Positions 46,001 through 64,000 of a stretch of 64,000 nt of DNA are shown here, piece after piece; positions within the stretch are counted from its first letter, which is position 1; each line of letters opens with the position of its first letter. Source of the DNA: Podarcis filfolensis (taxonomy: Eukaryota); assembly GCA_964270895.1 (NCBI GenBank), contig OZ185441.1; one strand, given 5' to 3'. Position numbers and translations under genes: made by a program. Under the pieces are notes generated by a model. It was not told the DNA's origin. It was given only the letters and a program-made list of their open reading frames with translations, and did no database searches.

Positions 46001-47177
46001 CGAATACACATTAACATATAAAGCAAACAAAAACACAAGCATCCCCCCAAAAAATCCTGGGAACTGTAGTTTAACCCTCCCGGAGCTACAATTTCCAACC
46101 CCTCTAACAAGTTCCCAGGATTCTTTTTCTGTGAGGGGCGTGTGCTTTAAATGTGTGGTGAGTACACAGCTACGGTGTCCACTCATAACCAGTTCTCAAG
46201 AATGGGCCATTTAATCCACACCCGCATTCAGCGGCCAGTGCCAAAGGCTCCCATTAAAGTTAATTACATAGTGTAGACTTCTCAGCTTAAAACAAGACCA
46301 ATAATTAGTTATTTTGAAATGACTTCCATGTGGTTTAACATCAAATGAGGCAAGTAAACTTAGTGAAGAGTCAGGGTTTTGGGGAATGGCAGAAAGGCCA
46401 GAAGGAGTTTGCGTCATTGCTGCATTATGTACAACAATGCACAATGACTCAAGTATTCTTACAAAATCTGAGGGGTGCCCATTACATGAATCACGCTTAG
46501 CTTGACTTCATAAAGAATGTAATCACATGTACCCTATCAAGCTGCACTTCTGTATGCCTATATATCTGGAAACTAATGAATGAGCAGTCACTCTCAGTGC
46601 TTTATTTCAATTATCCCAGCAGCTGAGCAGTGGTGAATGGCATGGTTGGATTCAGTCAGCCAGCTAGTGTGTGCATGGTGGGTGGGAGAGATAAATCAAA
46701 TGCAACACGTAGGTGCTCTGTTTTAATCTCCTGATTCATTGGAATGAAAACTATTATGATTTCAATGACTTTAGAGAACTCAGCAAACCCTGAGAACTTC
46801 CTTTCCAGAAGAATGCAATGTTCCTTCATTCCAACAAGTTTGGAAATAATGATTGCCTTCATTTGTTCAACTTTCCTCCCAACTTACCCTCTTACTAATT
46901 TTTCATAACCAATAATACAGAAAACATGAAGCATAACTCCTTCTCCTGCCAGAAAAATAACAGAAACAATTACCCCCCATGACTGCTCACTTTGATTTCG
47001 TCCCCCCCTCCCCTCCAAGGCCCTGGGCTTAAATAAACAACTAGACAAATAAATTATCAGAAAATGAGAGAAAAATGGGAAATCATTTTTAAATATAAAA
47101 GCTCAGCTTGATTTGGTTTTTTTAAAACATTGCTTTTATTAAAGATTTTAAAGTGAATCATGTCAATAAATTCTAAG

Positions 47178-47279
47178 AACAATCAAAATGGAAACAAGGG
47201 AATAAGAAACCATGTATTCAACACCATGTTATGTGTTGAATACATGGTTTCTTATTCCCTTGTTTCCATTTTGATTGTT
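47178..47279. repeat. Perfect inverted repeat, 47-bp arms and 8-nt loop
   Basis: 47178-47224 is the exact reverse complement of 47233-47279. Confidence 0.9.
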
Positions 47280-47550
47280 TGACAGCATTTAGAATTATCA
47301 TTTATAGAAAAGGTAAGATGGAATTCTTGGTGTCCATTCTCAACTCCTCAAGGAATGCAACACAGGGAAATGTTTTAATTGCACACACCTGGGATTCACC
47401 ATGCATAGAATAAATCTATGATTTTCAAGTTGGAGTACAGCTGGCTTGTGGAAAACCACATCAAAACACAGTATTTCAGAAGAAATTATGGGATACCTGT
47501 GGATTGTGGATAGCGTCATCTGCGTCTGGATTCAACAAATGGATGGAATC

Positions 47551-47815
47551 ACACAATTGTAGTGTTGGAAGGAACCCTGAGGATTATCTACTCCAGGGAT
47601 AGGCAAACTCAGCCCCCCCAGATGTTTTGGGACTACAACTCCCATCATCCCTGACTACTGGTCCTGTTAGCTAGGGATAATGGGAGTTGTAGCCCCAAAA
47701 CATCTGGAGGGCTGATCTAGTCCAACCCCCTGCAATGCAGGAATATGCAGCAGTCCCACATGGGGATCGAACCTGCAACCTTGGCGCTATCGGCACCATG
47801 CTCTAATCAGCTGAA
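47551..47815 (-). mobile_element. SINE interrupted by a truncated hAT MITE (47594-47714)
   Basis: MITE flanked by atctactc / atctagtc (8 bp, one mismatch) inside the SINE tail. Confidence 0.7.
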
Positions 47816-47862
47816 GTCCACTGGAGCTACAGTAAATGGTAAGGTGCACACAGCCTAGTTGA

Positions 47863-47877
47863 TTTATTGCTTTTATT
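47863..47877 (-). terminator. Two AATAAA hexamers, candidate CMAH polyadenylation signals
   Basis: Plus-strand TTTATT at 47863-47868 and 47872-47877, ~280 nt past the stop; use unverified. Confidence 0.35.
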
Positions 47878-48147
47878 TCATCACCCCATAAACCAAGGTT
47901 TTTCTAGGCAACAAGTAGTTAAAACAATTTTAGAATCCCAAAATTCCATACACCAACCAAACAGTTTCAGATTTTTCAAACCCGTGCTTCTAGGTAGTAC
48001 TTGCAAAGAAAATCAATGACGGAAGGGAGGGTGTGTGAATCTTAAATTGTTTTTAGAGGAAATTCACATAGTATAGGGACACGATTATTCAGTAAGCGTA
48101 GCAGAGTTTTTATCCATTTCACTTTTCCACAGAGGAAGCAGAGAAGA

Positions 48148-48286
48148 CTAAACCTTAGTAGGCAGGCACTTATCATCAACTTGGTTGGCTGCACAACAAT
48201 TTTCTTTCAATTCAGATTTTGTTTGCATTGTGCCAAGAAAGACTGGTGGGGTCAGAGGAAGTTTCATTTGGAAATGATTCCAAAAC
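48148..48286 (-). CDS. CMAH: CMAH last coding exon (frameshifted tail)
   Basis: aag|G TTT TGG AAT CAT gives FWNHFQMKLPLTPP, then VFLGTMQTKSELKENCCAANQVDDKCLPTKV*. Confidence 0.85.
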
Positions 48287-50229
48287 CTTTAAAAATATAA
48301 GAAAACAAAAACAGTTACACAGAGAAGGACAGTAGCTACTGGTACATTAAATTTGGATCAACTTGTTCACTATGTCCCAGTCCACAGGCTTGGGAACCCT
48401 TCATGGACTTGGGAAAAGGATTGTAACTCAGTGATAAAGCCCATGCATGCAAAACATCCTGGGTTCAATCCCCACCATCCATAGCAGGGCTGGGAAAGAC
48501 TCCTGAGACCTTAGAGAACAGCCAGTTACTGGACACAGCAGGGCTGGCCAATGTGTTGGTCAATATGTTGGTCAATATGTTGTTGGACTACAACTCCCAT
48601 AATCCATGTCCATGGTCCATGCTCTCTGGGGATTATGGGATTTGTAGTCCTACATCTGGATTCAACATGTTGGCCACTCCTGATGTACTGTGCAGACAAT
48701 ACAGAGCTCAATGAACCAATGGCCTCTAATCTATATGGCAGCTTCACATGCCTGGTTCCAGGGTGAAATAGCAACATACGTGGTGATAAGACCACACAGC
48801 TTTTCAGTAGCAATTTGTGAACACTTGTTTGTTTGTTTTGTTTTGTTTTTACTTAATATTATTATCTTTCTTTATATCCTGCATTTTCCCCTAAAAAGGA
48901 ACTCAAAGTGCTTCACAGATAAAATAGAAACAGCTAAGAAGATTGTGTGTGTGTGGAATCATTAAAGAAACAATTAAACATTAACAGAATTTAGAGCATC
49001 TATATGATCTATTAAAGCATCCAGATAATTACAATCTTATCCTTGTGCATAGCACCACTAGGAAGCTGCATGGTTGTATCAGCTCATCTGCTGAAATCAG
49101 TTTTGTTTACAGTTGAAGATATTTTGGTAACTTTAGGCTGGCTGCTGTCAAGGTTGGGTTATGGATAGCAACCTCTGTCTGGCATGAGAGAAGACGCAGG
49201 GGTTGTAGACCAAGCCAGTAGTCAGGACTGTAGAGCAAGTCAAAACCAAAGAATAAACTAGGATCAAGAAGACAGACAGGAGACAGGAGCAGAAGCCAAG
49301 CAGGACCAAGGAATACAGAAGCATGACCAAGCTCAGGAAGCCCTTGTTGCCGAAGCAGACTTGACTGGACCAGGAAGCCCTCTAAAACTTTTCTTCCTGT
49401 CCTGAAGGATCCTATAGCCCACCTAGGTGAGTGCAGTCAGTCCAATGTCTGAGCACACTGTACTGAACTATACAGTGTCTCACCAAAAAGGGGCAGCTGG
49501 ACACAAACCCCAAGGCTCTGAGTTCAAGACCCAGCAGCAGTGTACAAAATGAAGTAACATTTGGTAGAAAATGAATGATACATTGACAAACGGGATGTAC
49601 AAACTAGTGTCTAATGACACTGAGTCCTTTGTATTTATGAAGGAAAAAAGAATAGAATTTTCAAGACTCACTCTTAACTTTTGATTGCTATTAGGTATAG
49701 ATCCAAGTGTGTTAATTAGAAGTAAATCCGATTAGATTGTTTTGCTATAGGGATTAAGTAATTATTGGTTTTGCAAAGAGACAGAATAGATAAATGCATG
49801 CTTAATTAACATGCTTTCTGGACCACGTGATAATTGTTCAGCTGCAATTCTTTTTTAAAAAATGCTTTGAACATTTCTACCCCTCTCATTGCTTAAACCC
49901 CCCCCCCACAAAAATCCATGGACTTTCAAACTTGTATAATAATAGATGCAGTCACAGCTGCTTCTGTATCTTTCCCCTTTGGAACCGTTATGAGGGATAA
50001 AGTGACTTGTTTCAAGACAGGCTTCTGTTCACAACAGAATCCATTTCTTACATTGTATTCTAGAGGCATAAGGAATGGGAAAACTATAATCAACGAGGCT
50101 ATGCCAGTTGACACCAGCTTAATGATTTACACCTAGACGTATGCTTTCAAGGAACAATTTCAAAACAATTCTATATCAAATACTAGTGACTGGCATTAGC
50201 ATGGCAACAACAGAAACAAATGGGCTTAC

Positions 50230-50345
50230 TGGTGATGATATATGTCAGGGTCACGTTGTAGCCTGGTTTGGAATCCTATATACAGATCATCCCAGGGCAA
50301 TCCATGTTTCACTGTGTGCCTCATTACACTAACTCGGGCTTTTAT
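50230..50345 (-). CDS. CMAH: CMAH coding exon
   Basis: IKARVSVMRHTVKHGLPWDDLYIGFQTRLQRDPDIYHH; cag/gtaag; 116 nt. Confidence 0.95.
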
Positions 50346-51977
50346 CTGCAGAGAAGGACAAAGTACATGAAAATCTGGCATCAATTTTATTTGATACATT
50401 AATACAGCCAATAGGCAGAATCCAAAGACCACCTTCAGTTCTCATTTTCTTTCTTTCTGTCCTACTGAAAATTCTGAAAGTTCTGCTTCAATTTCAAAGG
50501 TAGCTTGCCTGGTGTTGGGGACACTGCTGTTCGTGAAGCACAAGTCCAAAACTCTCTTTGGCACACAGAGCTGGTTGTGTGGCTGTTTGGATGCCAGGCG
50601 CTGCTTCTGTTCTGGAAGATGCCCATGATATAACCACATTGTCCACAGTTCATACATATCACTAAGGGAGACATGGCTTGCTTAGCTTAACTATGGTTTG
50701 TTTGAATACGCAAATCCATCCCAGCAGACTTACCATGGTTTCTTTTCTGCCAAGAAACCATGGTGTGAAGCCATAGTTTGTTGTTGGCTTGTGAACCATG
50801 GCTTGCTTTAACTATGTTATATCTGAACCCAACAATGTTGCTTATGAAGATGCTTCCAAGACTGCTAAGCACAAGGTAACCACAGCCGGAAAACCAAGCT
50901 TTGAAAAAACAAGCCATGGTTTGTTTGCTCATCTGTGAGACAACTGATGGTTTGTTGAACAAGCCTTGATTAAAGAAATCATGGTTTAGTGTTAATGTGA
51001 GAACATAATTAGTATCTAATTCTGCTGCTGTGTTCTGGTGTGAACACAAATAATATCTTCTCATATTAAAAATGATTAGGCATGACTGTTTTTTACTCTT
51101 AGTGGCATCCTGAAATAACACAACAAAGAGAGAATAAGCAGGTCTCTGTCCCTTTTCCTAACACGCCCCCTCGAAATAAGGTTGTTGCTGTCCATATGTT
51201 TGGCCAGCTAACATTTCTAAGTGCTGGCTGTAACCAAAATGTAGTTCTTGTATGTTTCAAAATTACAAATACATTTCCTAAATTAAAATGAGAAGCTGCC
51301 TTGTGACTCTACTCATCAGCGGACATTTTGTGTGGAGTCAGCTAGAGCTAGAAGCAGGACTCTTAATGGTCTGGGAGGACACTTTATAATTGCCATATTG
51401 TATTTTCAGAAGGCCTAGTCTCATGCCCTCTGTTTTCCTGCCTTTTCCCATATTCCCTTTCTGCATTTCACTCAGTGCCCTCTTCTCCACCCTGCTTTTT
51501 ATCTTAGCCTTTGCTCAGGCCTTTTCCAGCAGCTAATGCCATATCCTTGGGGTGGTTCACATTAACCTTAAGATGACAGGAATTTCTCTGCTTGGGTCAA
51601 GAACTGAAGCCACAGCAAAACTGAAAGCAGATCCCAACACTGCTACAAAACTATTGAAAGAAGGCTGAGTGGTGGTATCATAAGCTGAACACTCTGAAAC
51701 AACAAGGGCATGGAAGTGTTGCATAAATAAGCTCAAAGGGATTCACTTCACACAATGAGAACCATGACAATATTTTAACAAACTATATATAAAAAGCATA
51801 AGAATTGTGCATTCTAAGTGCTAGTATACTGAATTAAACACACACAGCTTTATAGTCGTCCCCCCCAAATCCCTGTCACCAGAAATAAGTGAAAGTAAAT
51901 TGTTGTCCTTGAAGGAAATGTTATATATATATTTCTATATTTGAGAACATGAGAAGATATACATTTGTAATCCTTAC

Positions 51978-52094
51978 TTCCTCGAATGGACAGTCCCGGT
52001 TTGGTATTTCCATTGGAAAAGATAAGTCCAAAAAATCCACTAAGTAGTTGTACCCTCCAGGCAAAGGACTGAAATCATCATCAGTTTCTATTAC
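51978..52094 (-). CDS. CMAH: CMAH coding exon
   Basis: VIETDDDFSPLPGGYNYLVDFLDLSFPMEIPNRDCPFEE; tag/gtaagg; 117 nt. Confidence 0.95.
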
Positions 52095-52764: not shown

Positions 52765-52939
52765 CCTTATCACAAGGTTATAGCCTTTAAATCCAGCCCA
52801 TTGATAATATTCTTTCACCCAGGAAGGATAGAGAAAAATATCATCATCAACTGCAGCTCCAAGAGTGTGTAAGTATGGCTTAAAATCCCATGAGTCCTTG
52901 AAAATTTTTGTCCCTTCTGGAGGATCAACAATTCCTAAA
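52765..52939 (-). CDS. CMAH: CMAH coding exon
   Basis: LGIVDPPEGTKIFKDSWDFKPYL...WAGFKGYNLVIR; tag/gtgagt; 175 nt. Confidence 0.95.
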
Positions 52940-53416: not shown

Positions 53417-53812
53417 NNNNNNNNNNNNNNNNNNNNNNNNNNNNNNNNNNNNNNNNNNNNNNNNNNNNNNNNNNNNNNNNNNNNNNNNNNNNNNNNNNNN
53501 NNNNNNNNNNNNNNNNNNNNNNNNNNNNNNNNNNNNNNNNNNNNNNNNNNNNNNNNNNNNNNNNNNNNNNNNNNNNNNNNNNNNNNNNNNNNNNNNNNNN
53601 NNNNNNNNNNNNNNNNNNNNNNNNNNNNNNNNNNNNNNNNNNNNNNNNNNNNNNNNNNNNNNNNNNNNNNNNNNNNNNNNNNNNNNNNNNNNNNNNNNNN
53701 NNNNNNNNNNNNNNNNNNNNNNNNNNNNNNNNNNNNNNNNNNNNNNNNNNNNNNNNNNNNNNNNNNNNNNNNNNNNNNNNNNNNNNNNNNNNNNNNNNNN
53801 NNNNNNNNNNNN
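53417..53812. other. Assembly gap (396 N) in a CMAH intron
   Basis: Run of N. Confidence 1.
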
Positions 53813-54103: not shown

Positions 54104-54247
54104 CTGTCTGTTGGATCTCTGAGCATCCTTGCCAGGTCCAAAGTGGCTCCAGGTTTTGGTGTCCATGTTGAAACTTCTTCAGATTTTTTTTTAATTAGTC
54201 TGTTCAACTCCTCTGGGTCATTTTTGAGATTTGTTTCTTTGATGTAA
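54104..54247 (-). CDS. CMAH: CMAH coding exon
   Basis: YIKETNLKNDPEELNRLIKKKSEEVSTWTPKPGATLDLARMLRDPTD; tag/gtaatc; 144 nt. Confidence 0.95.
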
Positions 54248-56031: not shown

Positions 56032-56167
56032 CTGTCAGAAGGATGAGCTTCGACAAAATATCCCGCAAAAGGACAGTAGATTTTGGGCTTCAGATCAGTA
56101 ACTAGCTGGGCCTTGTAATTCAACAGCTTCTTCCTTTCGATTTTAATAAACTGGGCTTTCTTCTCCT
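56032..56167 (-). CDS. CMAH: CMAH coding exon
   Basis: EKKAQFIKIERKKLLNYKAQLVTDLKPKIYCPFAGYFVEAHPSD; cag/gtactg; 136 nt. Confidence 0.95.
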
Positions 56168-58070: not shown

Positions 58071-58208
58071 CAGTGAAATTTCCTCCGCTGTATACCATTG
58101 GGAATCCTGACGCTCCACCTGCAAAGTCACTCATCATGAGGTCAACCTTCTCAGGAAGCTTTCCACCATTGGGCCTGGTGCAGTCCACTGTATTCAGAAT
58201 TTTGTGCC
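58071..58208 (-). CDS. CMAH: CMAH coding exon
   Basis: GHKILNTVDCTRPNGGKLPEKVDLMMSDFAGGASGFPMVYSGGNFT; tag/gtaatg; 138 nt. Confidence 0.97.
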
Positions 58209-58545: not shown

Positions 58546-58627
58546 CTTTATATTCAATAATGATGCAAGTATCCATTTCAGGATGAACACCATCCATCAG
58601 TATCATAAATCTAAGATTCCTGTCCAC
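58546..58627 (-). CDS. CMAH: CMAH coding exon
   Basis: VDRNLRFMILMDGVHPEMDTCIIIEYK; aag/gtacc; 82 nt. Confidence 0.97.
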
Positions 58628-61195: not shown

Positions 61196-61343
61196 CTGTT
61201 GCCAAACTCCAAATGGGACAATGTTAATATTGGTCAGCTTTACACCACTCTGTTTGAGGTACCAGAATACAGGCCGTTCTGTCTTCCCAACATAAATGGG
61301 CACATCTGGCCTCCTCTCCACAAGTTTCTTCAGTGTAGGGTAA
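61196..61343 (-). CDS. CMAH: CMAH coding exon
   Basis: YPTLKKLVERRPDVPIYVGKTERPVFWYLKQSGVKLTNINIVPFGVWQQ; cag/gtctga; 148 nt. Confidence 0.97.
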
Positions 61344-63114: not shown

Positions 63115-63305
63115 CTGAGATGATCAGAATGCATGTGGCTGATGTAAATTAGATCTGCATGACACAGTCTTTCCAACCAGTCGCCAGGAGGCTCATGAAG
63201 CAACCACCAGCCGCGTGCAAAAGCAGGGCCAACGAGCCACGGATCGAAGATCATTCTTCTGTCTCCAAGTTTCAGGTCCATACATGCATGAGTTATGTAA
63301 GTTAC
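63115..63305 (-). CDS. CMAH: CMAH coding exon (metallo-beta-lactamase-fold motif)
   Basis: VTYITHACMDLKLGDRRMIFDPWLVGPAFARGWWLLHEPPGDWLERLCHADLIYISHMHSDHL; tag/gtatct; 191 nt; HxHxDH motif. Confidence 0.97.
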
Positions 63306-63541: not shown

Positions 63542-64000
63542 TTATGTCCCCATGGTGCTATTTTGAGAGTGGATGTTAGAGAAGATTTCCACTTCCTTTC
63601 TGCAGAAGAAAATACAGCTTTGCTCTTTGGCTGCTATGCCCCAAAACATGCAGCTGGGCAGAGAGTGCCTCTTCCTTTGGCCACCCCCAGAGGAAAAAAA
63701 GAGACCAGGTGACCTTGCCCCACTGCCAAAAACATTTCCTCTGCTTTGTCTGCTTCCACTGTGCCCCCTCCCCAAAGGTCCACACATACTGCCACTTCTG
63801 TTTCACACATTCTGTACTTTTATGTTTACACAAGCACATCCGCTCCTGTTTCCCCACCTCCCCGCTTCTGGCTAACACTGAGTAGGGAGGGTGCCCAGTC
63901 AGATGGGTAGCTAGCATATCTAAACTTTGTGCAGAGGCCAGAGGCCAAATAGGAACTGCTAAGAGCATTCAGAATTGGTGTGGGTGGGAGACTTGCATTG

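Follow-up and report, generated by a model that had tools for sequence, protein, structure and literature searches.

An old 8-nt deletion shared among Podarcis wall lizards replaces the conserved C-terminus of CMAH and probably leaves a tolerated, possibly hypomorphic enzyme

Introduction

CMAH, the CMP-Neu5Ac hydroxylase, makes the sialic acid Neu5Gc and decides its display. Many viruses, toxins and parasites use or avoid Neu5Gc as a receptor, and CMAH, lost time and again, serves as a classic example of host-pathogen-driven gene loss. For a long time sauropsids were believed to be without CMAH; lizards are the exception. The present case also touches on last-exon frameshifts, a general class in which the stop lies in the last exon with no exon junction downstream, such that NMD is not expected. 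Most of the NMD-escaping last-exon frameshifts described to date are disease alleles.

Lineage-specific CMAH inactivations have been reported for human, where a 92-bp exon is deleted, and for ferret, platypus, hedgehog and Gekko japonicus (Peri et al. 2018, PMC5767959). Here we describe a further lineage-specific lesion of this same non-essential gene, again within Sauropsida, where CMAH has often been lost. It lies in a 64,000-nt stretch of Podarcis filfolensis DNA, hereafter the window. The Podarcis lesion is old and widely shared, and it takes away the conserved terminal helix alone, leaving selection in place on the remainder of the enzyme.

Results

The window carries exons 4-13 of a CMAH orthologue

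Exons 4-13 were placed by tblastn with the closest Podarcis CMAH, Podarcis sp. XP_077789353.1, as guide protein. All lie in order on the minus strand at 88-100% identity (Table 1), identifying the gene as the Podarcis CMAH orthologue, for which hydroxylation of CMP-Neu5Ac is predicted by homology. A scan of open segments on the same strand gave nine exons with clear CMAH peptides in addition to the last one, running from 63305 to 50230, and none of them is interrupted. All nine junctions are GT-AG, each with a single solution. The window, P. lilfordi, P. raffonei, Podarcis sp. and Lacerta agilis share the same lengths for exons 4-12 (191, 148, 82, 138, 136, 144, 175, 117 and 116 nt), and the exon phases in the window are those of the other four lacertid loci. 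A run of 396 N occupies 53417-53812 in intron 9. Exons 1-3, which encode the Rieske domain, fall beyond position 64000 and hence outside the window; the Rieske ligands C55, H57, C76 and H79 are present in the deletion-carrying relatives Podarcis sp. and P. raffonei, with PF00355 on record.

The window exons were also searched one by one. Exon 4 alone (63117-63305, minus strand) matches CMAH among proteins with a best E of 7e-36 and Pfam Lactamase_B_3 with 28.2 bits against a cutoff of 24. It reads ...YISHMHSDHL and contains an HxHxDH-type motif; H196, H198, D200 and H201 are all kept, in columns that are nearly invariant. Searches from full-length CMAHs returned named CMAHs of mammals, fishes, amphibians and numerous squamates, three Podarcis clusters among them. 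Cluster members brought in L. agilis, another P. muralis model and one more Podarcis species with two isoforms. The Camelus ferus CMAH used as a query has an aberrant annotated tail that makes it poor for C-terminal comparison; it still returned squamate CMAHs. A close second CMAH copy with an intact end was considered and rejected, as the window holds a single exon series and protein searches find one locus per Podarcis genome. No alternative allele of at least 90% likeness was seen over exon 13, where contig depth is single-copy.

Table 1. Coordinates of CMAH features in the window
Feature	Position	Strand	Evidence and remarks
CMAH exon 4	63115..63305	-	tblastn and GT-AG junction; carries HMHSDH metal-binding-type motif, metallo-beta-lactamase fold
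CMAH exon 5	61196..61343	-	tblastn and GT-AG junctions
CMAH exon 6	58546..58627	-	tblastn and GT-AG junctions
CMAH exon 7	58071..58208	-	tblastn and GT-AG junctions
CMAH exon 8	56032..56167	-	tblastn and GT-AG junctions
CMAH exon 9	54104..54247	-	tblastn and GT-AG junctions
CMAH exon 10	52765..52939	-	tblastn and GT-AG junctions
CMAH exon 11	51978..52094	-	tblastn and GT-AG junctions
CMAH exon 12	50230..50345	-	ends ...RLQRDPDIYHH plus split Q codon; covered by RNA contig and stranded RNA reads
Last coding exon (CMAH exon 13 of Podarcis models)	48148..48286	-	tblastn and unique GT-AG junction; RNA contig
Deletion junction	48244..48245	-	DNA alignments; no indel in any read or contig set
New 31-codon frameshift tail, VFLGTMQTK...PTKV	48151..48243	-	reading frame; same tail in P. 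raffonei and Podarcis sp.
Out-of-frame remnant of ancestral C-terminus, SFLAQCKQNLN plus TGA	48207..48242	-	identical to ends of P. lilfordi (CAI5779877.1) and L. agilis (XP_033010619.1)
CMAH proximal 3'UTR	47778..48147	-	RNA contig and stranded RNA read depth

An 8-nt deletion shifts the frame of the last coding exon

Inspection of exon 13 in the frame set by the upstream exons reveals FWNHFQMKLPLTPP, followed by VFLGTMQTK...PTKV and a TAG stop at 48150-48148. A polypyrimidine tract precedes the acceptor AG at 48288-48287. Read from 48242, a shifted frame gives SFLAQCKQNLN and then TGA at 48209-48207. An earlier note on this DNA had reported both frames, and translation confirms each of them. 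The proteins of P. lilfordi and L. agilis end ...TPPDWKSFLAQCKQNLN, which corresponds to the +1 frame of the window, and since this out-of-frame stretch matches the true C-terminus of two relatives residue for residue, chance resemblance is not an issue.

Alignment with P. lilfordi and L. agilis DNA shows that 8 nt (TGACTGGA) are missing from the window between 48245 and 48244 on the minus strand. Both of these species read CC-TGACTGGA-AGTCTTTCTTGGCA, whereas the window, P. raffonei and Podarcis sp. read CC-AGTCTTTCTTGGCA; at the junction itself, CC-TGACTGGA-AGTC contrasts with CC-AGTC. The placement is unique and the downstream sequence is otherwise collinear. An indel of 1 or 2 nt in place of the 8 nt was ruled out by the same alignment. 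The size of the loss is thus as the earlier note had proposed, while the junction it gave, between 48244 and 48243, is one base off because the ancestral proline codon is CCT and not CCA.

The deletion removes the codons for D-W-K and shifts the frame, with the last 14 of 583 residues replaced by a tail of 31 residues. The 14-residue ancestral lacertid end in P. lilfordi and L. agilis is DWKSFLAQCKQNLN, part of a longer C-terminus ...KLPLTPPDWKSFLAQCKQNLN, and it has DWK followed by SFL, bearing out the prediction that an (N/D)WK segment before SFL had been removed. In the new tail, 11 old-frame codons are now read out of frame and a further 20 codons come from what was 3'UTR. Its predicted length of 31 residues is upheld by the reading frame and by the occurrence of the same tail in P. 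raffonei and Podarcis sp.

Independent reads carry the deletion and the transcript is spliced

Reads and contigs were examined over 47400-50700 in four runs, namely same-species DNA, sister-species DNA, RNA contigs and stranded RNA reads, where the sister species is presumed to be P. muralis. Within 48148-48288, all four were free of inserted or deleted letters. For the same species, a contig from a different study spans 48097-48604 without gaps and without differences inside exon 13. The sister-species DNA, which is about 2.6% diverged, spans exon 13 with substitutions only, all of its indels lying in the 3'UTR at 47890-47981. Across 48235-48250, for which a check of raw and RNA reads had been suggested, the 8 nt are absent and an assembly error is excluded.

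A spliced RNA contig of 2181 nt joins 47778-48284 directly to 50228-50345, with a 2-nt GT ambiguity. This places the exon 12-exon 13 junction at the predicted sites and in frame (...YHH-Q-FWNHF...). Stranded raw RNA reads of the sister species fall only on these two exons and the 3'UTR, with first mates only on the plus strand, the orientation that the common stranded protocol gives for a gene on the minus strand. Alternative splicing that would restore the frame was rejected, since the RNA contig has the same acceptor and the same sequence as the DNA. The transcript should escape NMD because the new stop lies in the last exon.

Transcription continues to at least about 47400, through a high-copy repeat at about 47511-47843. 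The copy number of this 3'UTR repeat is very high (summed contig depth up to about 1.4 million in the DNA runs, and high in RNA too), and a related copy is found in intron 12 at 48510-48620; joints such as 47650>48578 connect the two. By eye, the repeat resembles a tRNA-derived SINE.

The deletion removes a nearly invariant terminal helix

Among 127 vertebrate-type CMAHs that extend past FWNHF, the pattern xW..[FL][LVM] is kept in 120. The Podarcis frameshift proteins make up five of the seven exceptions, and the remaining two are a conservative sturgeon variant and a truncated carp model. Column counts in vertebrate CMAHs are 71/71 for W571, 70/71 for F574 and 70/71 for L575. The Salvator C-terminus reads DWKSFLAKCKQNPN, the CMAHs of Anolis, Eublepharis, Sphaerodactylus, Tiliqua and Hemicordylus have DW(K/T/Q)(S/L)FLA..., and mammalian CMAH has NWKSFLM.... 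Comparison of squamate last exons and C-termini, as had been proposed, therefore separates non-carriers, with DW(K/Q/T)xFLA, from Podarcis carriers with the frameshift tail. The conserved C-terminal (D/N)W-x-x-F-L helix is absent from the window CMAH, with VFLGTM... in its place. Its loss lowers confidence in full activity, not in CMAH orthology.

AlphaFold2 models were obtained for the intact and frameshifted proteins. For L. agilis CMAH (118-row alignment, mean pLDDT 93.4), residues 571-582 (WKSFLAQCKQNL) form a terminal helix with pLDDT of about 96. In the frameshifted Podarcis CMAH the body is unchanged, and pLDDT over the last three 10-residue blocks is 61, 46 and 37, values that give model confidence and are no measure of stability. 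The lost segment would be a conserved amphipathic helix, packed on the catalytic body through its W, F and L anchors, and the new tail is probably floppy and free of constraint. No solved CMAH structure exists, and no structure covers the CMAH C-terminus (Foldseek against the PDB). Foldseek with the L. agilis model matched only metallo-beta-lactamase-fold proteins. Among its matches are the di-iron beta-hydroxylases CmlA (5kik, 5kil) and FrsH (8a90), at E of about 1e-8 to 1e-9, which hints that the modelled CMAH catalytic domain may resemble this hydroxylase class.

By position, the new tail has F at the former W site and M at the former L site; that this partial mimicry of W and L by F and M aids tolerance is speculation. 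The tail varies among carriers. Relative to P. raffonei, P. muralis and Podarcis sp., the window has N>K in the tail in addition to I562M upstream, while the P. raffonei tail has T>P. In the P. muralis-type allele, CAA has become TAA at 48183, which cuts the tail to 20 aa, and the P. muralis models accordingly stop 11 residues earlier. This change is present in the sister-species RNA contig and both P. muralis models and absent from the sister-species DNA run; tail length therefore appears polymorphic.

The rest of the coding sequence remains constrained

To understand how the gene has evolved, dN/dS was computed by the Nei-Gojobori method from counts added up over the individual exons 4-13 (424 in-frame codons, split codons skipped). 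Values among carriers are 0.30, 0.26 and 0.17, and the value for P. lilfordi versus L. agilis is 0.10. Each carrier pair has too few nonsynonymous changes for neutrality, which is rejected at P = 0.02, 0.003 and 2e-5. The coding sequence has diverged about a third as much as the introns. Exons 4-13 of the three carrier genomes show no additional stop, frameshift or splice defect.

The absence of such lesions was set against a neutral expectation calibrated on introns of the same locus, using 0.0035-0.0044 frameshifting small indels per site between carriers, a substitution length of 0.072 for the three-carrier tree and a coding stretch of 1291 nt. Neutral evolution would have produced about 7.6 frameshifts and 3.5 stops on this tree (about 11 in all) versus none observed (P about 2e-5), although genealogies differ along CMAH and parts of the gene may have been linked to an intact allele during some of the neutral time counted.

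The lineage of the window itself gives a different picture. Its private changes number 6 nonsynonymous to 1 synonymous (V143I, R188H, V276I, L465Q, L533P and I562M; window positions 50296 for codon 533, and 63296, 63160, 58558, 52802 and 48265). Neutrality could account for this ratio, which is above that of the other lineages (Fisher P = 0.012, post hoc). Residue 533 is L in 73 of 73 vertebrate CMAHs and P in most distant homologues, and the window has P; both P533 and M562 also occur in the independent same-species run. Pooled over all carriers, private changes amount to 12 nonsynonymous to 7 synonymous, and neutrality is not rejected (P = 0.087). The 6:1 ratio hints that the window's own lineage may be under somewhat relaxed constraint. 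Taken over the carriers, CMAH does not have the marks of a unitary pseudogene, as we found no further lesions, dN/dS of 0.17-0.30 and a spliced transcript, the 6:1 ratio in the window lineage alone being the exception.

The deletion is old, shared and set in a mosaic genealogy

The deletion and frameshift tail occur in P. raffonei (XP_053252710.1), P. muralis (XP_028594407.1) and Podarcis sp. (XP_077789353.1), which have the same gene and exon structure as the window. Absence of the 8 nt is seen at the DNA level in the window, P. raffonei and Podarcis sp., and the state of P. muralis rests on two protein models together with RNA and DNA contigs of the sister species. None of the database entries for the three relatives flags the frameshift. 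The earlier note had pointed to relatives of proven activity with the same tail as informative; relatives sharing the tail are thus at hand, none of them with proven activity. The 8 nt are kept in P. lilfordi and L. agilis. Of the proposal that the deletion is lineage- or allele-specific, the first part stands: the deletion belongs to a lineage and is common to at least four or five Podarcis taxa. Its spread over several taxa and old haplotypes speaks against a single allele.

In intron 12 and the 3'UTR, the three carrier haplotypes differ pairwise by 3.1-3.7%, and they differ by 4.1-4.6% from P. lilfordi and by 6.2-7.3% from L. agilis. Since the carrier haplotypes differ to this extent around the exon, the deletion is old, on the order of millions of years. 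A total of 12 sites at the 3' end match the deletion pattern, being derived in all carriers and ancestral in P. lilfordi. Together with the divergence values, these sites indicate a single origin on the local genealogy, soon after the split from the lilfordi-type haplotype and well before the carriers diverged.

This distribution does not follow the species tree. P. muralis and P. raffonei belong to two deep Podarcis clades that split more than 11 million years ago, with P. lilfordi on the P. raffonei side (Yang et al. 2021, PMC8114931). With carriers in both deep clades and P. lilfordi intact, either the allele is older than the crown of the genus and was incompletely sorted, or it was moved by ancient introgression. 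Different parts of CMAH also have different histories. In the middle of the gene (about 54-58.5 kb), Podarcis sp. groups with P. lilfordi at 90 derived sites and the window groups with P. raffonei. At the 3' end (46500-49500), in contrast, Podarcis sp. groups with the carriers (window and P. raffonei) through the deletion and the 12 derived sites. The mosaic CMAH genealogy fits the extensive ancient introgression and mosaic genomes reported genome-wide for Podarcis (PMC8114931), and the scatter of the allele across clades provides a clean marker of the mosaic ancestry of the genus.

Discussion

We favor a tolerated, possibly hypomorphic remodelling of the CMAH C-terminus over a pseudogene, and we place the probability of this reading at roughly 0.6. 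A single deletion of 8 nt in the last coding exon cost the enzyme its D-W-K codons and its frame, the transcript would escape NMD, and the product should be a full-length enzyme whose end is altered. The rest of CMAH appears to have been under purifying selection since the deletion, and for this reason the altered enzyme most likely retains its activity at least in part. An argument against this reading is that the lost W..FL is almost invariant in vertebrates, and its loss could abolish function or stability. No paper was found in the literature searched on CMAH or Neu5Gc in Podarcis or Lacertidae, or on the role of the CMAH C-terminus.

An artefact reading, with the 8-nt gap due to faulty assembly or consensus calling or else private to the animal sequenced, has in its favor only that indels are a common error type of long-read assemblies, and the recurrence of the same junction in short-read-derived contigs of the same species from another study, in sister-species DNA and RNA, and in three independently assembled Podarcis genomes renders it vanishingly improbable. 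A far more serious rival is early pseudogenisation, where the terminal helix was essential, its destruction made CMAH a loss-of-function allele in these Podarcis, and decay is only beginning. Loss of the near-invariant motif is what such a process would start from, the new tail has already gathered two nonsynonymous changes and one premature stop among carriers, and CMAH is a dispensable gene with repeated losses that include snakes and a gecko (PMC5767959). This alternative matters most for the window's own species, whose 6:1 private changes include L533P at a vertebrate-invariant site. Against it, haplotypes that are ~3% diverged have none of the ~11 frameshifts, stops or broken splice sites expected in exons 4-13, pairwise dN/dS and the low coding divergence speak for constraint, P. 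raffonei, P. muralis and Podarcis sp. all have full-length models, transcription and correct splicing persist, and the inactivating lesions listed by Peri et al. (PMC5767959) all fall upstream of this one, no later than residue 556. We regard slow decay after loss of function as a possibility to be taken seriously, albeit a rather unlikely one. The earlier note had left the choice between a tolerated change and an early step in gene decay, and of the two the intact reading frame and splice sites, the dN/dS values and expression fit tolerance better.

Selection may also have acted on the frameshift allele itself. Were the allele favored, for instance by lowering or removing Neu5Gc as a pathogen receptor, it could have been kept as a long-lived polymorphism or spread by introgression, and both the presence of carriers in the two deep clades alongside the ancestral allele in P. 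lilfordi and the mosaic genealogy of Podarcis sp. are in line with this. Mosaic genealogies and heavy introgression are, however, genome-wide in Podarcis (PMC8114931) and make selection unnecessary, both alleles were seen segregating in none of the four runs, and five haplotypes are too few to test selection on an indel, leaving adaptive or balanced maintenance with only a slim chance. The stronger version, in which the frameshift is a CMAH null or strong hypomorph kept across Podarcis as a long-lived or introgressed polymorphism under pathogen-driven selection, is likewise improbable. If it were true, neighbouring wall-lizard species would differ in Neu5Gc display and, with P. lilfordi still holding the intact allele, Podarcis would be the reptilian parallel to the CMAH histories of human, ferret and cat.

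The practical consequence is modest until Neu5Gc is measured. These lizards offer a natural experiment among matched close relatives, with P. lilfordi and L. agilis on one side and P. muralis, P. raffonei and the window species on the other, which can show whether the CMAH C-terminus is needed for activity. P. lilfordi (CAI5779877.1) and L. agilis (XP_033010619.1) are orthologues with exons 4-12 of equal lengths and 95-100% amino acid identity within individual exons; unlike the window, they have kept the 8 nt, the ancestral end and a confidently modelled terminal helix.

Comparison with described systems places the Podarcis allele apart from both of its nearest classes. Like the general class of NMD-escaping last-exon frameshifts, it gives a novel C-terminus with no downstream exon junction, and a stable, spliced Podarcis mRNA was seen. 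Unlike disease alleles, the Podarcis frameshift is fixed or common in several wild species. In contrast to the inactivations of Peri et al. (2018, PMC5767959), in which exons are removed or the protein ends no later than residue 556, with decay of the gene to follow, the Podarcis deletion exchanges only the last 14 of 583 residues in a gene that has stayed open, constrained and expressed.
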